Assembly: GCF_000315625.1 (NCBI RefSeq)
Contig: NW_005434651.1
Coordinates: 602,045-665,693 of the forward strand
Reading direction: 5' to 3'
DNA: 63,649 bases
From: Guillardia theta CCMP2712
Lineage: Eukaryota; Protista; Cryptophyta
In this document: positions 13,804-22,466 of the stretch, in pieces
How the letters are laid out: each line of letters opens with the position of its first letter
Position numbering within the stretch: the stretch's first letter is position 1
Position numbers and translations under genes: made by a program
The notes under the pieces: generated by a model
What the model was told of the DNA's origin: nothing
The model's database searches: none
Seen by the model: only the letters and a program-made list of their open reading frames with translations

Positions 13804-16142
13804 TCAGATTTGGTTCGAGAGAGTCTTCACATCGTCCTCGGAGGGAGGGTGATCGGCAATGACCTGCTTCATACTTCCTGGCGTCTTTCCAGTGTCAAGT
13901 TCGATGTCCATACAGTAGCATTGGAAGATGGTGTCAATGCACATGTCCTGAGAGAGCATTCATCAGTCTCCTCGAGTCCTCGAGCATGCACTCACCCAAA
14001 CATCCATAAACGCGGAGGCAACACTGAAAGAGATCAACCCGACGATGGCTGTGGGGAAGACCGGCGCAGACGTCACATCGTTGAAGTTGCCTCCAACCAT
14101 GATCAGAGCGCAAAGAAACGTGGAAGCGATTGCGATAAAGAGCCTTCCTATGGCGATGAAAATTGTCGTCATCACATTCAAGGTTCCAATCCGTAGGCAG
14201 TTTCTCAAAATCAGCATAAACGCTGCTTTTGCTGATACCAAAAAGTTCGTTCCTCGTATCGCTGTTTGAATGTAAGCGTTCTTGTTGAGGAAATTCAAAA
14301 AGCGTTCCAAGCATGAAAGGCAACATTCGCCACAACATGCAAATATCTTGACCAGCGGGTTGTTTGGGTTCATCTTCTTCAGTTTGTACACGTAGTAGCG
14401 GAAGACCCATCGAATGAATTGCACGATAGCAATAATCAAGCTGCCGAATGCTGCGGTACCACCATGATATATCATAGTTCGCTTAGTTGACGATAACAGG
14501 GGAAGGACCAAGGTTCTCTTGTCAAACGCCAAGAACCACTTGAAACAAGCAAGATGTCAGTTAGCGCAGCGAGAAATAACAAAACATACCTCGGCTGTGG
14601 CTCCAGCAATGATGAGGTTTCCGCATGCAAGAATAAATGTCCTGCCCCAGAGAAGACCAAAGAAGTGATAAATGATCATCCTCTGAAGCGTAGTGTTCCA
14701 AACAAACTGATGCTGACTTGCCTCCCATGTTCCCGATGATGCTAGGTAAAGGAAGACAAATATCCACCACACGAACAACGCAACGGTGGCTGCCCATTGG
14801 AAAACAGGCAGCAGAAGCATACTGGGAACTTCCGCTAGACATTCAGTCGCAATTCCAATCACCTTGATGGCAGTGCTGATCCTTGGCAGCATCACCAAGA
14901 GGATGAGCGTGTAGGCAACCAAGGCTACTCCAGCCACTGCGGCTGCAGCAATCGTCATTCCTTGATTCGCTTGCGCAGGACCCAGTGAAACACTGGAAGC
15001 CAAGGCTGCACTCCCAGGGATTGTGTTTGCATTGATGAAGTGAGCCTTAATAGCGAGTACCAAGACAGCCGCTGCCAGCAGAAGCCATGTAGCAAGCAGG
15101 ATGATGTAGGATATGGGAGCTCCGAAAATCTTGAGGAAGAACGCGTAGACGAAGGCGATGACGAGGGCAATACCACCTGCCGCTACGATGATCCACTTTT
15201 GTTCTTGCACTTGATCTGAGAGGTAGGCGAAAGTCTGCGATGGAGTGTTGATCGCAGCAACAATGTAGCTTGGACTTTCCGATGACGCCGTTAAGTTGGA
15301 AGAGGATGTGGAGGATACCGACCCTGACCCCGTCGAAGGCACGCAACGATTGAAGCCCGACATGGGCGAGGAGGAGTAAGTCAGGAAGCAGAAAGCGTAA
15401 GGCTGGTTCTGACTGACGGTCTTTGTGGCAGGCACGTTGCTGTTGATGACTTGACTGCCCTGCCCTGTAAGTGCTCCTGTGCAGCAAGAATCGGAAGGTT
15501 GATTGCCACTTCCACAATCGCAAAGCGGGTTTTGGCTCAGACAAGAGTAGTACCCTGTTGCTGTTCCAGATTCTGGGCATTCGGTGTTTTGCGATGTTTT
15601 GAACGGCAAGATACACCTAAGATAGTTGGTCTTCTGTCAGGAGGATGAAACCCTTCAACACCGTCAAGACGACCTGATCTGCAATGAAGACGGTGGACAT
15701 ACGTCAACGCAGACCGACCATGTCAGATTGCTCGACGATGGTCGTGGATAATATCTGATGAATCAGTCAATCAAACATAAATGCAAAGTCAGAATAGAAC
15801 GATATACAGCAAAGTCTTGTTGGAATTGATTCCGGTCCCACAAGTTTGCCCGAGGAAGTCATAGCCATAATGAAGTCGGGGTGGCTGTCCATTGGAAAAG
15901 GCAAATATCCCCACGATGAGCATTCCGATCCAAAACACGATGAAGATCAAGCAACACAACATATCAGTACAGCCTCTGTGCTGCTTGATCTCGAAATCCT
16001 CGCCCTGTGGATTCAAAGAGCAAACAAGTCAAGACCGAATATCGGGTGGGAGATGCTGATGGCATACATTCTCCAACTTCAATGGACTCCCGCCCTTCTG
16101 GTCTATCTTTTGTCGCAGCTCCTCGTGAGCTTCACTCTCCAT
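13804..16142 (-). CDS. Choline transporter-like (CTL/SLC44 family) protein, paralog 1
   Basis: RGCTDMLCCLIFIVF, YGYDFLGQTCG, YHGGTAAFGSLIIAIVQ, CLERFLNFLNKNAYIQTAIRG, CIDTIFQCYCMD motifs; multiple TM segments. Confidence 0.93.
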
Positions 16143-17451: not shown

Positions 17452-20350
17452 TCATGCCAATGCCCCTCGTTCTTCCTCCTCTTTCTTCTTCTTGTCCTCA
17501 GCAGACTCCTGAGATGGGATAGAGAGCCAAGCGTCGTTCTCGCCTGTGACGATCGTCTCAACCTGCATGATCAGCATCGAGATGCTCTCAGTGGAGGCTT
17601 TGTCCACTGCTGATATGCTGTGCCACCAGGTGATAATGTTGTTCAATTTCATCAGTGACTTGTTGTATCGCGCAAGCTTCTGCCGTGTCCCGTGGAACTC
17701 CAACCAGGAGACGATGGCGGCAGAGAACGCGATCAGGATGGCTCCGTACTCGGGATACCCAAGGGTAGAGACAGCAGCTGCTCCGGAGTTTGAGAGGATG
17801 GTCAGCCAGGTGCAAGCATTGAGCGTTTGTCTGTACCCAGGGAGTCTGCTGCGGTAGAAATCCAGCATCAGGTTGACTCTGACCTCGATGTACTGGTTGG
17901 GCGAGGTGGGGGTGTGATGGTTGTCCACCAGAGGCGCGTCCTGCTGGGTCTTGTCGTCGTCCCACTTGTGCTGGAAGTGCTTGTAGACCTTGCGGGGGTA
18001 GCTGCGCATGAAGGAAGTCTCGCCGATGTCCGCAGACTCCATGAGCTCTGCCCTGAGCTCGAGGACGCGGTCACGGAGAGCGATCTCCGGGGCATCCGAC
18101 TTGTTGTTGTTCATGGCGAAGACGCCGACGCGCGTCCTGTACATCCAGATGACGCTGACGATGCGTGATGAGATGTTTCGCAGGATCCGCCAGCGGTGCA
18201 TGGGGTTGTAGAACGCCAGGATGGCCCCGATGATGGACGCCGACAGTGAAAGGAAGAAGATGATAGTCTTGGTCCTCCCGTCATCAAGGCAGGTGAAGGC
18301 AACAACCTCACACCTGTCTACTTTGTTCTTCATCACTGTGATCGCTGTGATGACGAGGCCCAAGGACAAGATGACGATATAGCCTAACTTGGATATGATC
18401 TTGTACGACTCCGCCACGTGGTTGCAGATGTCCACAGTGTCCCAGGCCTCCCGCAAGATCTTGAGACCTTCGAGCGAGTTCTCCTCGGGGATCCTTCCGA
18501 TCCGGACAAGATCCTCAATGAGCTTGCTGAGGCCCTTGACGTCGCTCACGTTCCTCCCGTAGAAGATGGGGGAGGAGAGCAGCTGGCTCACTTGCTCCCC
18601 ATACTCCACCCGTGCGTCTTCAGAGATGCTCGCCTTCATCGCGTCGAAAGATTCCCACAGGGGTTTGATCCCCTTCTTCTCGCACACCCGCACGACCTGC
18701 CAGTAATTCTGCATGTGCTCTTCCTTGAGGAAGTCGACAACTGAGCGAAGGTCAGCGAGCTTCTCCTCCTCCGAAGAATCCATCTTTTCCCCTCTGTTCT
18801 TCCTCTCGATCGCCTCCCAGAGTTTCTCCGGGTGAGAGCTAGACTTGGAAGCATTCGGATTCTTGCTAATCGCCGGTTCATATTCCTTCAGGACCGAATC
18901 CATAAACGCGATGTTACACACGTCATAGACTTCATTCTGATTCGCTTGAAACAGCTCCTCTCGGAACTCTCGGATCTGAGAAAATGCTTCCTTCAGCCTC
19001 TCTTTCCTGCTGTTCCCTCGCAACTCCTTCCTCTCGCGCAGGTCCAGGAACACGACAGGAACAGAAGAGTTGATGATGTCAACACAGATCTGCAGTCAAA
19101 CAATCCCATCACCCAAGACTTACAGGCCACGAGCAGGGCCAGCAAACTCACCTGGTTGTTGGTGTTCTCATGCGTCCTCGTGAACCTCAGAGTGAAGCAG
19201 GGGATAGACTGAGAGAAGTTCTCTAGGATCATGTTCTCCAGCAGGTTCGCCGGCCCGGGGTTCCAGTTCACAAACTTGCCGTTGGTGTCCACGGTGGCGC
19301 CCTCGAAGAGGATGTAGTTGTCCACTCCCGCCAGCAGGTCTTGGCTTACCCACTTTGAGCGTTCCGGGCTAGAAACGGCCTTGTTGAAGTCGTCCATAAG
19401 GTCATCGTTCCTCCCGAAGCTCTCCGACTTGCTCCTGATCTGATGCGACACCGTGCCATCTACCCTGCTCTGCCGCTGGAACACCCACCTCCAACCCGAG
19501 CCCATGGTGGAGAAGGGGAGCTTCGCCCCCCACTTGGATCGCAGCAAGTTGACCGCCTGAGAGAAGGCATGAGCGCCCATGTCCCAGTCTGAGGCCGGCA
19601 TGAGCACTATGGCGTTGGTTTGTGCGCACAGAGGGATCAACACGTCCCGAAAGAAGTTCACCAGCTTCACCTTGGCGTTCTCGAGCTCACTTTGTTGCAC
19701 AGATGGGCCATGGTTACCAGGCAGATAGTTCTCACGCCACATGTCGGGCACTCCTCCTATATTCCCGCTCAGCAAGGGTTGCGGATCGAATTTACCCTCC
19801 TCGAAATCTTTCCCCACCCTCTCCGTGAACCACCTGTACTGCATCGTCCCTGCCTCTGAGTGCAGAAGCTTCACCACCAACTTGGGCTTCCCGTTCAGCT
19901 CGAACGCATGGAACAGCTTCGGGATCGATTCTCGGGTGAAGACGGAGGCCTGTCGGTTGTTGAGCACCAAAAGCTTCTTCGTCATCGACGACGACCCGAC
20001 TTCGGCATGGATGTCCTCGACTGCAACATCATCTCGTCAGATGCTGCTCAAGTTCTCACAAGTAAGAAAACAACACGTACCTAGGTTATAGAGAGTCTGT
20101 GCCAACCATGAAATTGGGCCATGAACACACCGAGGAGAAGGAAACGTTAGGAAACGCGGGCCACAGGATTCGAGCAGAGGGATTGACACACCTTGGCTCT
20201 TATCTCCAGCAGCTCGTCTTCTATCTGCAAACCGTTGCTCCTGCGAGAGTGGATCTCTGACCTGATGGTGGCAGGCTGCCTTGCGGGTGGAGCGGCCGTG
20301 GGATCGGGTTCCATCGTGTTGACAGATCCTGGAAGTTGATCTTCCTCCAT
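17452..20350 (-). CDS. SLOG/LSDAT (TRPM N-terminal-like) domain + two tandem SLATT (2TM) domains
   Basis: ORFs 18993-19985 and 17452-19053 join in frame through a 62-nt GT-AG intron (19090-19151). N-part: KPKLVVKL, VLIPLCAQTNAIVL, NYILFEG, IPCFTL..DIINSSVPVVFLD. C-part: AWD..2TM..NPMHRWRILR..IWMYRTRVG, then SPNQYIEVRV..FY..2TM..KLARYN..L.NIITWW..VETIVTGENDAW. Confidence 0.85.
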
Positions 20351-21108
20351 GATCGCTCAACAGATTGACAATGTAGATATATTGAAACTGTCGCTTCTAT
20401 TGTTATTTCGCCAAGCCGTGCTTTGTGTATCCCCTGACAATCTTGCAGTCTGCGAGACTTTTGGCGCACTTACGTCTAAAACCCTTTCAATCTCGTTCCC
20501 TGTGGCTGTCAACACGTCCCTACATCTATTCTTTGCTCTCTTATATCTTGTGCTCACTCTCCTCTGCTCTCCTCTTACTCGCCCTCCTCTTTCCCTCCTC
20601 TCTTCCTCTTCCTCTGCATCCTTCGCCTCCTGCTGGTCGTTACTACGTATCCATTTTTTTCCGCTTCTGTTGGTTGGAAGTTCACGATTGCGCTCTGAGG
20701 CAGACCTGTTCCCACCATTTCTCTCTGAGGCAGACTCGCATCGAGTTTAGCTAATTCTTACTCCCCAAGTCTTATTTCAACAGAACAGGACTTAATTTAA
20801 GGCTAATCCTTGCATTTTTAGGTATCTTTGAGAAATATTTAGAGAGCTTGTCGGTTAATTTAAGGTCCCTCCTGGAGGAATTGGGGAGCAAGGTGTAATG
20901 GCGGCGATCGGGGGGCAGGAGCGACGGCGAGGCGGGAGATGTTGAGAGCTGACATGGTGGAATGAGGCTCCGATGTGCAAGTAATGCGCATCAGCTGATA
21001 GTCGTGCGATGAGGAACGTCGTGTGCTGCTCGCTCTGTTGTATCCCGCTACTGCCCTGACTAGGTTGGTTTTGCGGCTGCTCCGTTTGATCTTGTGGAAC
21101 AGAGCAAG

Positions 21109-22466
21109 ATGTTTCTGGAGTTATCGATCGAGAAGAAGATAGCATTCCTGATGTCTGTCCACCCAAGATTGGGAGCTGAGTCGTGCGGATCATGGCAAAA
21201 GTTAGCCTCGGACAACTTCTGCTTCGATGATGTGCTCATGATCATTGTGAAGGCAGCAGAAATCCGACCTGGGATCGTGCGGAAGATGTCGAGGCGAGAA
21301 ATTTTCATGGTCGGGGAGGGAAAGCTACAATGTCCGCACTGTGTTGCTGTCGACTCGGCGGGCAACATTGTAGTAGTGGACTGCGATGGGGTCAAGGTCT
21401 TCAGGGGAAGGGATGGAACATTGCTGAAGAGCATGGGGCACCGGGGAAGCAATATCACTGAGCTGCACCTTCCATGGGGAGTGGCTGTCGACCAGGACGA
21501 CAGTATCATCGCTGCCAACGTGGGTGAAGACAACATAGTTGTCTTCGACAAGGACGGGAGCGTGAGGCGGACAGTGGGTCGGAGCGGATCTGGGGAGGGA
21601 AAGCTAAAGCACCCCTACGGTGTGGCGGTGGACGGGGAGGGGAACATCGTGGTAGCAGACTACGACAACAACAGGCTGCAGCTGTTCGGGAGGGACGGGA
21701 GGTTCCTCAGGGCGATAGGGAAGAAGGGCAGCGGGGAAGGGGAGCTACAGCAGCCGTGGGGGGTGGCGGTGGACAGCAACGGCGTCATAGTCGTGGCTGA
21801 GAGCCTGGGGAGGAGAGTCGCCATGTTCAAGAACGATGGCACCTTCATCAGGTCGATCCGCAGGTGGGGGAGCGAAGGCTCCGCGCTGGGTCGCCCGCGC
21901 GGCCTCGCCATCGACATGGAGGGGAACGTGGTGGTGGCGGACTGGGAGATGCACAGAGTTCTTGTGTTCAGGTGGGGCAAGCTGCTGTGACTGTGCTCGT
22001 GGAGGAAGGGAGTGACGCGCTTGCTGGCTGCAGGCAGGATGGGAGCTTCGTGCGATCCTTCGGGGGTCGGGGGTCGGGGGACGGGGAGCTGAAGCATCCA
22101 TGTGGTAAGCTGCTGATGATCACATGCGTATGGTTGCCAGAATCTCCTCCCTACCTTGTCCCCTCTCCCATCCCCATCCCCCTCCCTACCTCCTCTCCTC
22201 CCCCTCCCCCTCCCTACTTCCTCTCCTCCCCCCCCCTCTCTACCTCCTCTCCTCCCCTCCTCTTCCCTACCTCCTCCCCTCCTCCTCCTCTACTCCCTCC
22301 CTTGCCCGGACTCACCTCGTCTTCCCTGCCTCTTCCCCTCCTTTCTCCTCTCTCTCTGCTTTCTCATCCCTTGGGTGCAGGCGTTGCTGTGGATGGGATC
22401 GGAAACATCGTGGTAGCGGACTACGAGAACCATCGGGTTCAAGTGTTCAGCGCTGAGTTCGAGTGA
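21109..22466 (+). CDS. NHL-repeat beta-propeller protein
   Basis: Repeated GSGEG(K/E)LxxPxGVAVDxxGNIVVADYxNxRxQxF units; two introns near 21972-22033 and 22104-22380 restore the last repeat, ending ...VQVFSAEFE*. Confidence 0.92.

Follow-up and report, generated by a model that had tools for sequence, protein, structure and literature searches.

What kind of protein arises when a sensor-like alpha/beta domain is joined, in a single alga-encoded polypeptide, to membrane hairpins of bacterial type, and what might such a protein do? This question is raised by GUITHDRAFT_137062 (P0001), an 886-residue protein encoded on a nuclear scaffold of the cryptophyte Guillardia theta CCMP2712 (contig NW_005434651.1), within a 63,649-nucleotide (nt) stretch that is referred to here as the window and whose first letter is position 1. 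NCBI names the protein a 'hypothetical protein', while its UniProt name already refers to a SLATT domain. An earlier sequence-only reading of the window, made without database searches, had proposed a SLOG(LSDAT)-SLATT-SLATT effector. Our analysis shows a predicted four-transmembrane (four-TM) protein whose C-terminal ~330 residues are a DUF4231 + SLATT_1 double hairpin, and structural models show that its N-terminal ~480 residues make up a single module with the SLOG fold, of LSDAT/TRPM MHR1/2 type. In profile comparison, the algal protein proves homologous to bacterial single-gene LSDAT_prok-DUF4231-SLATT_1 proteins and runs collinear with them over its whole length. What is new relative to these bacterial LSDAT-SLATT sensor-effectors is that the protein is eukaryotic, that its sensor is enlarged and TRPM-like, and that all of its glycine loops are rewritten.

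The membrane half is recognised by two Pfam families. DUF4231 covers the first hairpin (E 9.9e-8, 32.8 bits, against a gathering cut-off of 24.7), and SLATT_1 covers the second over its full model, positions 1-122 (E 6.4e-22, 78.3 bits, cut-off 26.3), so that the two tandem SLATT-type hairpins perceived in the sequence-only reading are both found above the Pfam cut-offs. When the SLATT_1 region is used as the seed of an iterated profile, the DUF4231 region of family members is matched as well, and the two hairpins are therefore homologous tandem modules. On the Kyte-Doolittle scale, the first module consists of two clear, strongly hydrophobic helices, with the motif RWRxLR...YRTRVG located after TM2. 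The helices of the second module, rich in Ser, Ala and Gly, lie below the 1.5 Kyte-Doolittle threshold but can be aligned with the bacterial helices and with the SLATT_1 model over its full length; the WW...VEKAS...E...E...W helices come after TM4, and the module carries family-invariant residues. All four predicted TM helices have basic residues next to their cytosolic ends, and by the positive-inside rule the sensor, the segment between the hairpins and the C-terminal helices would all be cytosolic. These four helices, all of SLATT type, are the only TM helices predicted in GUITHDRAFT_137062, and no ion-channel Pfam family matches the protein.

Sequence searches with the N-terminal half had a different outcome. 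No Pfam family matched this half of the G. theta protein at E up to 10, and neither LSDAT_euk (PF18139) nor LSDAT_prok (PF18171) was found above its gathering score; of the HMMER matches that the sequence-only reading proposed to look for, those to SLATT_1 and DUF4231 were obtained and those to the LSDAT models were not. The pattern extends to the family described below. LSDAT_prok gave weak matches to just 2 of 57 family N-domains (best E 0.0039), and among the top 89 members, at E up to 0.001, Pfam LSDAT matched none, DUF4231 matched 26 and SLATT_1 matched 21. The Pfam LSDAT models thus miss the whole protist clade, and surveys of eukaryotic SLOG proteins based on PF18139 and PF18171 will undercount. 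Family profiles searched against PDB sequences likewise gave no TRPM match.

Structure prediction revealed the fold. The AlphaFold2 (AF2) model of exon 4 alone reached a mean predicted local distance difference test score (pLDDT) of 86.6 and a predicted template modelling score (pTM) of 0.87. With this model, the top 50 Foldseek matches were all TRPM channels, and an exhaustive structural search ranked TRPM MHR1/2 first (Z 11-12.8), before SPIKE1 (Z 8.9) and SLOG domains of the LOG/YpsA/ThsA type (Z 4.5-5.8). Because the strand VPVVFLD sits in the next exon, amino acids (aa) 61-555 were also modelled (pLDDT 86.6, pTM 0.86). The top 50 Foldseek matches were again all TRPM, and structural scores rose once both exons were joined: Z 20.7 over 287 residues with TRPM5, Z 20.5 over 277 residues with the TRPM2 MHR1/2 crystal domain (7aov), Z 15 with SPIKE1 (9nw3 chain 6A), and Z 9.5-10.4 over 156-209 residues, nearly the whole targets, with YgdH, type-II LOG, MCP, TM1055 and ThsA-SLOG. 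The motifs quoted as evidence of an alpha/beta domain are beta-strands in the AF2 model (PKLVV, AIVLM, YILFE, PCFTLR and VVFLD). Since the fold is complete only with the strands of the next exon, the SLOG fold spans an intron. The sequence-only reading was right about the LSDAT/TRPM type of the fold, on which the AF2 models, the TRPM-first Foldseek and structural matches and a profile tie to LSDAT_prok agree. It had confined the fold to 19152-19985, however, and the last strands lie in the next exon, with the module extending down to ~18448; what it had called a helical linker is mostly part of the TRPM MHR1/2-like module.

That sensor and hairpins are encoded by one spliced gene, as had been proposed from two open reading frames (ORFs), is supported at several levels. 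The large minus-strand exon, when translated, shows 100% identity to GUITHDRAFT_137062, and the public protein maps to 20350-20262, 20240-20192, 20096-20081, 20020-19152 and 19089-17455, which makes 886 codons in 2658 nt. An intron of 62 nt joins the minus-strand ORFs 18993-19985 and 17452-19053 in frame (...HENTNNQ/ICVDIINSSVPVVFLDL), and the peptide across this exon 4/5 junction (NTNNQ/ICVDII) recurs in the Hanusia phi transcriptome proteins P0002, 88% identical to the G. theta protein, and P0003, 47% identical over the large last exon. The remaining introns, of 60 and 95 nt, also have GT-AG ends, and the peptide of the micro-exon fits a family-wide motif, IKAxTMxxMVE, found too in P0003. 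The annotated first intron (20261-20241, gtcagag...cgcag) is doubtful: at just 21 nt it is implausibly short, it is in frame, the ORF 20147-20350 stays open across it, and read-through would add 7 residues. One G. theta paralog (C2) consists of two overlapping ORFs in a matching arrangement, and another, on contig 49 (C49), holds the complete architecture in a single uninterrupted ORF of 933 aa.

Homology to bacterial proteins was traced from the membrane module. A tblastn search of the double hairpin against 72,556 plasmids returned exactly two matches, both LSDAT_prok-DUF4231-SLATT_1 fusions: WP_341472297.1 of Chlorohelix allophototropha (LSDAT_prok E 8e-34) and WP_243803067.1 of Hymenobacter tibetensis (LSDAT_prok E 5.5e-46). 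Eleven further bacterial loci, from Bacteroidota, Acidobacteriota and one gammaproteobacterium, have the same domain order, which bears out the statement of the sequence-only reading that LSDAT followed by two SLATT modules occurs in bacteria. With the Chlorohelix protein as query, a search of genome contigs gave no match. When the algal and bacterial full-length alignments were compared by hhalign, 547 columns aligned collinearly (99.94% probability, E 6.8e-37), beginning with the first strand of the SLOG fold and ending with the last helix. The algal N-terminal module by itself matched the bacterial LSDAT_prok alignment at 91.5% and E 8.6e-7, with 187 columns that span beta1 to beta7; matches of hhalign to single sequences were weak, and only the profile-profile comparison gave the LSDAT tie. 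The double-hairpin module matched its bacterial counterpart at 99.8% probability, with the juxtamembrane motifs AWD/AWE, YRTR, DDxxSxxxPxxY and WW common to both.

Algal and bacterial proteins thus share their domain order within one polypeptide, and both are encoded by stand-alone genes without a conserved partner. They differ in the sensor. The bacterial module is compact (~250 aa), keeps its four glycine loops and is matched by Pfam LSDAT_prok at E 1e-34 to 1e-46, whereas the algal one measures ~480 aa and has large insertions at ~aa 110-160 and 369-520. To speak of an undescribed system, as the sequence-only reading did, is too strong: the architecture is built from Pfam families, the UniProt entry is already named for SLATT, and later papers credit the LSDAT-SLATT family to Burroughs et al. 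2015 (PMC13143021, PMC7159879).

The altered glycine-rich loops that had been noticed in the G. theta sequence are a property of the whole family. In the profile alignment, all four Gly-rich loops of the LSDAT/SLOG nucleotide site are replaced family-wide by Ser/Asp/Arg-rich ones. The bacterial LGGAD corresponds to LLHSEAG in G. theta and to LLxSxG in the algal family; DGGTQxGV corresponds to MPASDWDMGA and xxAxxxCxLS, AGGG to RFTRTHEN and xxTG, and EGSGGLAD to LDLRERK and LDxRxR, respectively. Given these replacements, the ligand is probably bound otherwise than ADP-ribose (ADPR) or LOG substrates are, and gating by a nucleotide can only be presumed. Polar residues conserved across the family stand directly after strands beta1, beta2, beta6 and beta7 (N73/Q75, S106, TG and D357/R359/R361, respectively). 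Strand ends are the usual ligand position in SLOG domains, and a pocket with altered chemistry may persist there. Elsewhere in its genome, G. theta also has separate, canonical LSDAT_euk genes. One of these (L006:940-2565, G000:C80; E 1.6e-41) keeps its glycine loops (QGGQGT, KGSGKVAD) intact, and its raw ORF ends in an EMEMEM / RWRWRW low-complexity run, probably intron read-through.

An exhaustive HMMER search with exon 4 collected 142 cluster representatives at E < 1e-3, as against 3, 3 and 2 matches from word-based protein searches. Every long member has the same four-part order (N-extension-SLATT-SLATT), and every member that carries an organism name, in this family of at least 142 clusters, comes from a marine protist. 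Named members include the cryptophytes Guillardia, Hanusia and Hemiselmis, the dinoflagellates Polykrikos, Gymnodinium smaydae (at least four paralogs) and one labelled MGD, as well as Emiliania, Picozoa and Telonema. G. theta has exactly three paralogs, which are the only SLATT_1 matches of its genome. In a quick tree, they fall into one clade with two Hanusia proteins, with a support of 100, and the duplications are therefore older than the split of the two genera. Identity to the Hanusia ortholog is 93% in the SLOG core, 86% in the MHR1/2 extension, 91% in the first SLATT module and 94% in SLATT_1, and about 50% in the N- and C-terminal tails. The similar regional values indicate that the sensor is as constrained as the membrane part. 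One apparent bacterial member, in a metagenome-assembled genome, was rejected: its contig (MDTB01188102.1 of GCA_001757005.1, L012), binned as 'Parcubacteria group bacterium', carries tubulin-tyrosine-ligase (TTL), GAF-PDEase_I and TPR genes and is most likely a misbinned eukaryotic contig.

Three known systems help to place the protein. The TRPM N-terminus (MHR1/2, LSDAT_euk; TRPM2, TRPM5 and TRPM7) is the best structural match by a wide margin, at Z 17-21 over 259-301 residues. As in TRPM channels, a cytosolic sensor lies N-terminal to a membrane conductance module, the conductance being predicted in the algal protein. Unlike TRPM channels, the algal protein has neither a six-TM TRP pore nor a TRP box, it shows no match past MHR1/2 (the matched chain ranges end at ~366-483), its glycine loops are replaced, and it has no sequence-level match to TRPM chains. 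The SLOG domain of Thoeris ThsA (7uxs) shares the fold at Z 9.7 over 169 of 196 residues, and in both proteins a SLOG sensor is fused to an effector; ThsA, however, belongs to a far more distant SLOG clade, and its effector is a Sir2 NADase instead of a membrane module. ThsA binds, through its SLOG domain, 3'cADPR produced by a TIR protein. Whereas Thoeris has this TIR partner, the G. theta locus has none, and one metagenomic relative has a TIR neighbour. Tetrahymena SPIKE1 represents a eukaryotic, non-channel LSDAT fold, aligned over 237 of its 256 residues; it is a structural, soluble, microtubule-binding protein of the ciliary tip and lacks a SLATT module (bioRxiv 10.1101/2024.12.02.626492).

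On this evidence, we consider it somewhat better than an even bet (probability about 0.55) that the four-TM SLOG-SLATT protein is a self-contained sensor-effector, in which a signal at the SLOG module would alter membrane permeability via the SLATT hairpins. A cytosolic small molecule or other signal would engage the SLOG module at the strand-end pocket. Conserved helices next to the membrane (LEGLxLLRxAWD, RWRxLR, YRTRVG) would relay the signal, and the SLATT hairpins would respond by changing the permeability of the membrane, parallel to the way in which MHR1/2 gates the TRP pore in TRPM2. We infer gating because sensor and membrane part are obligatorily fused and equally constrained, because the MHR1/2 region of TRPM2, which binds ADPR (PMC13143021), offers a precedent, and because SLATT domains have been predicted to be pore-forming effectors of conflict systems (PMC7159879). 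Recent work still describes the way in which SLATT modules affect membranes as an open question (bioRxiv 10.64898/2026.04.29.721553).

Several observations weigh against this reading. All four Gly-rich loops of the nucleotide site are gone throughout the family, and, as the structural role of SPIKE1 shows, ligand gating does not follow from an LSDAT fold alone. At its locus, GUITHDRAFT_137062 has no adjoining gene that would generate a signal, and no partner gene, a signal-making one included, is conserved beside the bacterial homologs, whose neighbours are variable. PADLOC returned no relevant match, for the bacterial homologs as well, and the literature searched yielded no experimental study of any LSDAT-SLATT protein, and hence no measured ligand, conductance or localisation. 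As to its output, the proposed sensor-effector could serve regulated ion signalling or cell death and defence, and we lean slightly towards a regulated conductance that helps to signal stress or infection. With its few, stable copies and highly identical orthologs, the gene suits such a conductance no less well than it suits a suicide pore of an immune system; what still speaks for defence is the relative with a TIR neighbour and a virus-related expression change in Gephyrocapsa.

That defence reading, in its strict form a dedicated immune or programmed-cell-death effector, supposes that infection gives rise to a nucleotide, such as an ADPR derivative made by a TIR protein, which would bind the SLOG module, and that the SLATT part would form a lethal pore, with abortive infection as the result. 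It agrees with the predicted role of SLATT in conflict systems (PMC7159879) and with the requirement of a SLATT protein for DRT10 phage defence (bioRxiv 10.64898/2026.04.29.721553), as well as with the divergent TIR neighbour of P0022, a family member from marine contigs, with the presence of at least 21 TIR_2 matches in the G. theta genome, and with the position of the Chlorohelix homolog amid toxin-antitoxin and integrase genes. In addition, a SLATT-domain gene of Gephyrocapsa huxleyi, which may or may not belong to the algal family, showed a strong expression change in a virus-infection experiment (bioRxiv 10.64898/2026.09.30.755861). The three paralogs, however, all pre-date the Guillardia/Hanusia split and show 88-94% ortholog identity, unlike a fast-evolving immune family; most loci have housekeeping neighbours, the TIR adjacency is a single locus, PADLOC is silent even on the bacterial homologs, and the nucleotide-binding glycine loops are lost. 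Such an effector is therefore possible and doubtful at once, and for the antiviral defence or cell death put forward in the sequence-only reading we found no direct evidence: no adjacent signal-making gene, no PADLOC match, and three stable paralogs with an ortholog identity of 88%. If it were true, a bacterial-type membrane effector would operate in ecologically important marine algae. The rewritten loops, together with the large helical insertions relative to the bacterial module and the existence of a structural LSDAT-fold protein in SPIKE1 (9nw3 chain 6A, Z 15; bioRxiv 10.1101/2024.12.02.626492), would also suit a SLOG module that has lost small-molecule sensing and become a protein-interaction or scaffold domain, with SLATT as a membrane anchor or as a constitutive channel regulated in some other way. 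We regard this as unlikely, as the strand ends, the binding position of SLOG ligands, keep conserved polar residues, and the constant fusion of two equally constrained halves suggests a coupled function.

An enzymatic SLOG module that makes or destroys a signal at the membrane, by LOG-like processing of nucleotides or nucleosides, is very improbable. SLOG members such as LOG are phosphoribohydrolases and LOG-family structures match at Z ~10, but the LOG-type GGxGT catalytic/binding loop is absent and the nearest structural relatives are the non-enzymatic MHR1/2 domains of TRPM. It is scarcely credible that the gene model is an artefact in which two genes were merged, one for a soluble alpha/beta protein and one for a membrane protein of SLATT type. 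The transcript support does come from Hanusia; against an artefact stand the junction peptide in the Hanusia transcriptome proteins, a fold that is complete only with both exons joined, the undivided frame of the C49 paralog, and the fusion of the two parts in all long family members. Returning to the sensor-effector reading, a bolder version of it, speculative and in our view rather improbable, would see in the protist family a ligand-gated SLATT channel passed on by vertical descent. It would be the closest analogue alive today of the protein from which the TRPM N-terminus descends, as that protein was until a TRP pore took the place of the SLATT hairpins, and with an Asp/Arg-rich pocket instead of the four glycine loops it would sense a ligand class new for SLOG domains; the TRPM-style MHR1/2 elaborations present in the protist sensor are absent from the compact bacterial LSDAT module. 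As a eukaryotic single-polypeptide sensor-SLATT protein whose sensor is confidently modelled, GUITHDRAFT_137062 offers a test case for the role of SLATT domains, for their gating and for the origin of the TRPM N-terminal sensor.

Table 1. Features of the SLOG-SLATT gene of Guillardia theta, in window coordinates
Feature	Position	Strand	Basis or remark
Whole coding sequence, GUITHDRAFT_137062	17452..20350	-	886 aa, five exons in the public model, stop 17452-17454
5' coding exons 1-2 (aa 1-46), weakly conserved N-terminal tail	20192..20350	-	tail 48% identical to Hanusia
Micro-exon of 16 nt, TLYNL(V), with AG and GT flanks	20081..20096	-	sequence read directly
Exon 4 (aa 52-341), SLOG/LSDAT-like core, strands beta1-beta6	19152..20020	-	AF2 model, Foldseek, structural search, hhalign to LSDAT_prok
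GT-AG intron of 62 nt inside the SLOG fold	19090..19151	-	sequence read directly
Last SLOG strand VPVVFLD with LDxRxR, helical lobe and returning strand-helix (aa 342-555)	18448..19089	-	AF2 model, structural search; homologous across the family
First SLATT-type hairpin module, Pfam DUF4231 (aa 563-672)	18097..18426	-	Pfam, hydropathy, SLATT_1-seeded profile
TM1 (~aa 576-597)	18322-18387	-	hydropathy
TM2 (~aa 615-637)	18202-18270	-	hydropathy
Second hairpin module, Pfam SLATT_1 (aa 741-862)	17527..17892	-	Pfam, collinear with bacterial proteins
TM3 (~aa 766-785), Ser/Ala/Gly-rich	17758-17817	-	alignment to SLATT_1 model
TM4 (~aa 788-806)	17695-17751	-	alignment to SLATT_1 model

In the window, the SLOG-SLATT gene is flanked by a divergent NHL-repeat beta-propeller gene (21094-21990 and 21864-22466, plus strand; NHL E 1e-29) and, downstream, by a choline-transporter-like (CTL/SLC44) exon (14557-15609, minus strand; PF04515, E 5e-19). 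None of the TIR_2 matches of the G. theta genome, at least 21 in number (for example, C23:11346-11669, C150:11249-11533 and C149:91910-92233), lies near any of the three paralogs, so that a Thoeris-like linkage of TIR and SLOG genes is not seen there. Many of these matches start uninterrupted frames of ~1200-1370 aa, and together they suggest that a family of large TIR proteins has expanded.

Among metagenomic relatives, the neighbourhoods are more varied. In the marine contigs that carry P0022, a 252-aa TIR_2 gene lies divergently ~350 bp upstream (L015:1459-2217, minus strand, and L017) or 176 bp upstream (L028). These contigs are compact, a BTB-BACK gene is present on L015 and L028, and L015 has a GC content of 64%. 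A giant-virus origin of the TIR-adjacent contig was considered and rejected in view of this GC content, the compact genes with BTB-BACK, and a search of IMG/VR that gave no relatives of P0022; the contig probably comes from a picoeukaryote with a compact genome. A relative in the P0055 cluster, also from a marine metagenome, has a Guanylate_cyc_2 (PF09778) gene divergently ~170-195 bp upstream (L021:1287-2360 and L027:2640-3713, both minus strand), and the probably misbinned contig L012 has a cyclic-nucleotide phosphodiesterase gene two genes away from the family member. The loci of four metagenomic relatives have no neighbour of TIR, cyclase or phosphodiesterase type. All of these neighbours are to be taken as leads and not as statistics.

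The bacterial loci have surroundings of their own. On the Chlorohelix plasmid (NZ_CP128403.1, 35023-45691; L024), the LSDAT_prok-SLATT gene is found amid RelE/ParE, helix-turn-helix, PIN-like/DUF433, Uma2 endonuclease and tyrosine recombinase genes, a mobile neighbourhood rich in toxin-antitoxin genes. In Hymenobacter, the gene directly upstream of LSDAT_prok-SLATT is GH108 lysozyme-like at both loci and is read from the same strand (L025:2974-3639, L029:5240-5905). Finally, a protein cluster of ~205 aa from Nucleocytoviricota in the ESM Atlas resembles the first hairpin module in predicted structure, with a template modelling score of 0.42 by query and 0.66 by target, and giant viruses may thus carry single SLATT-like hairpins.

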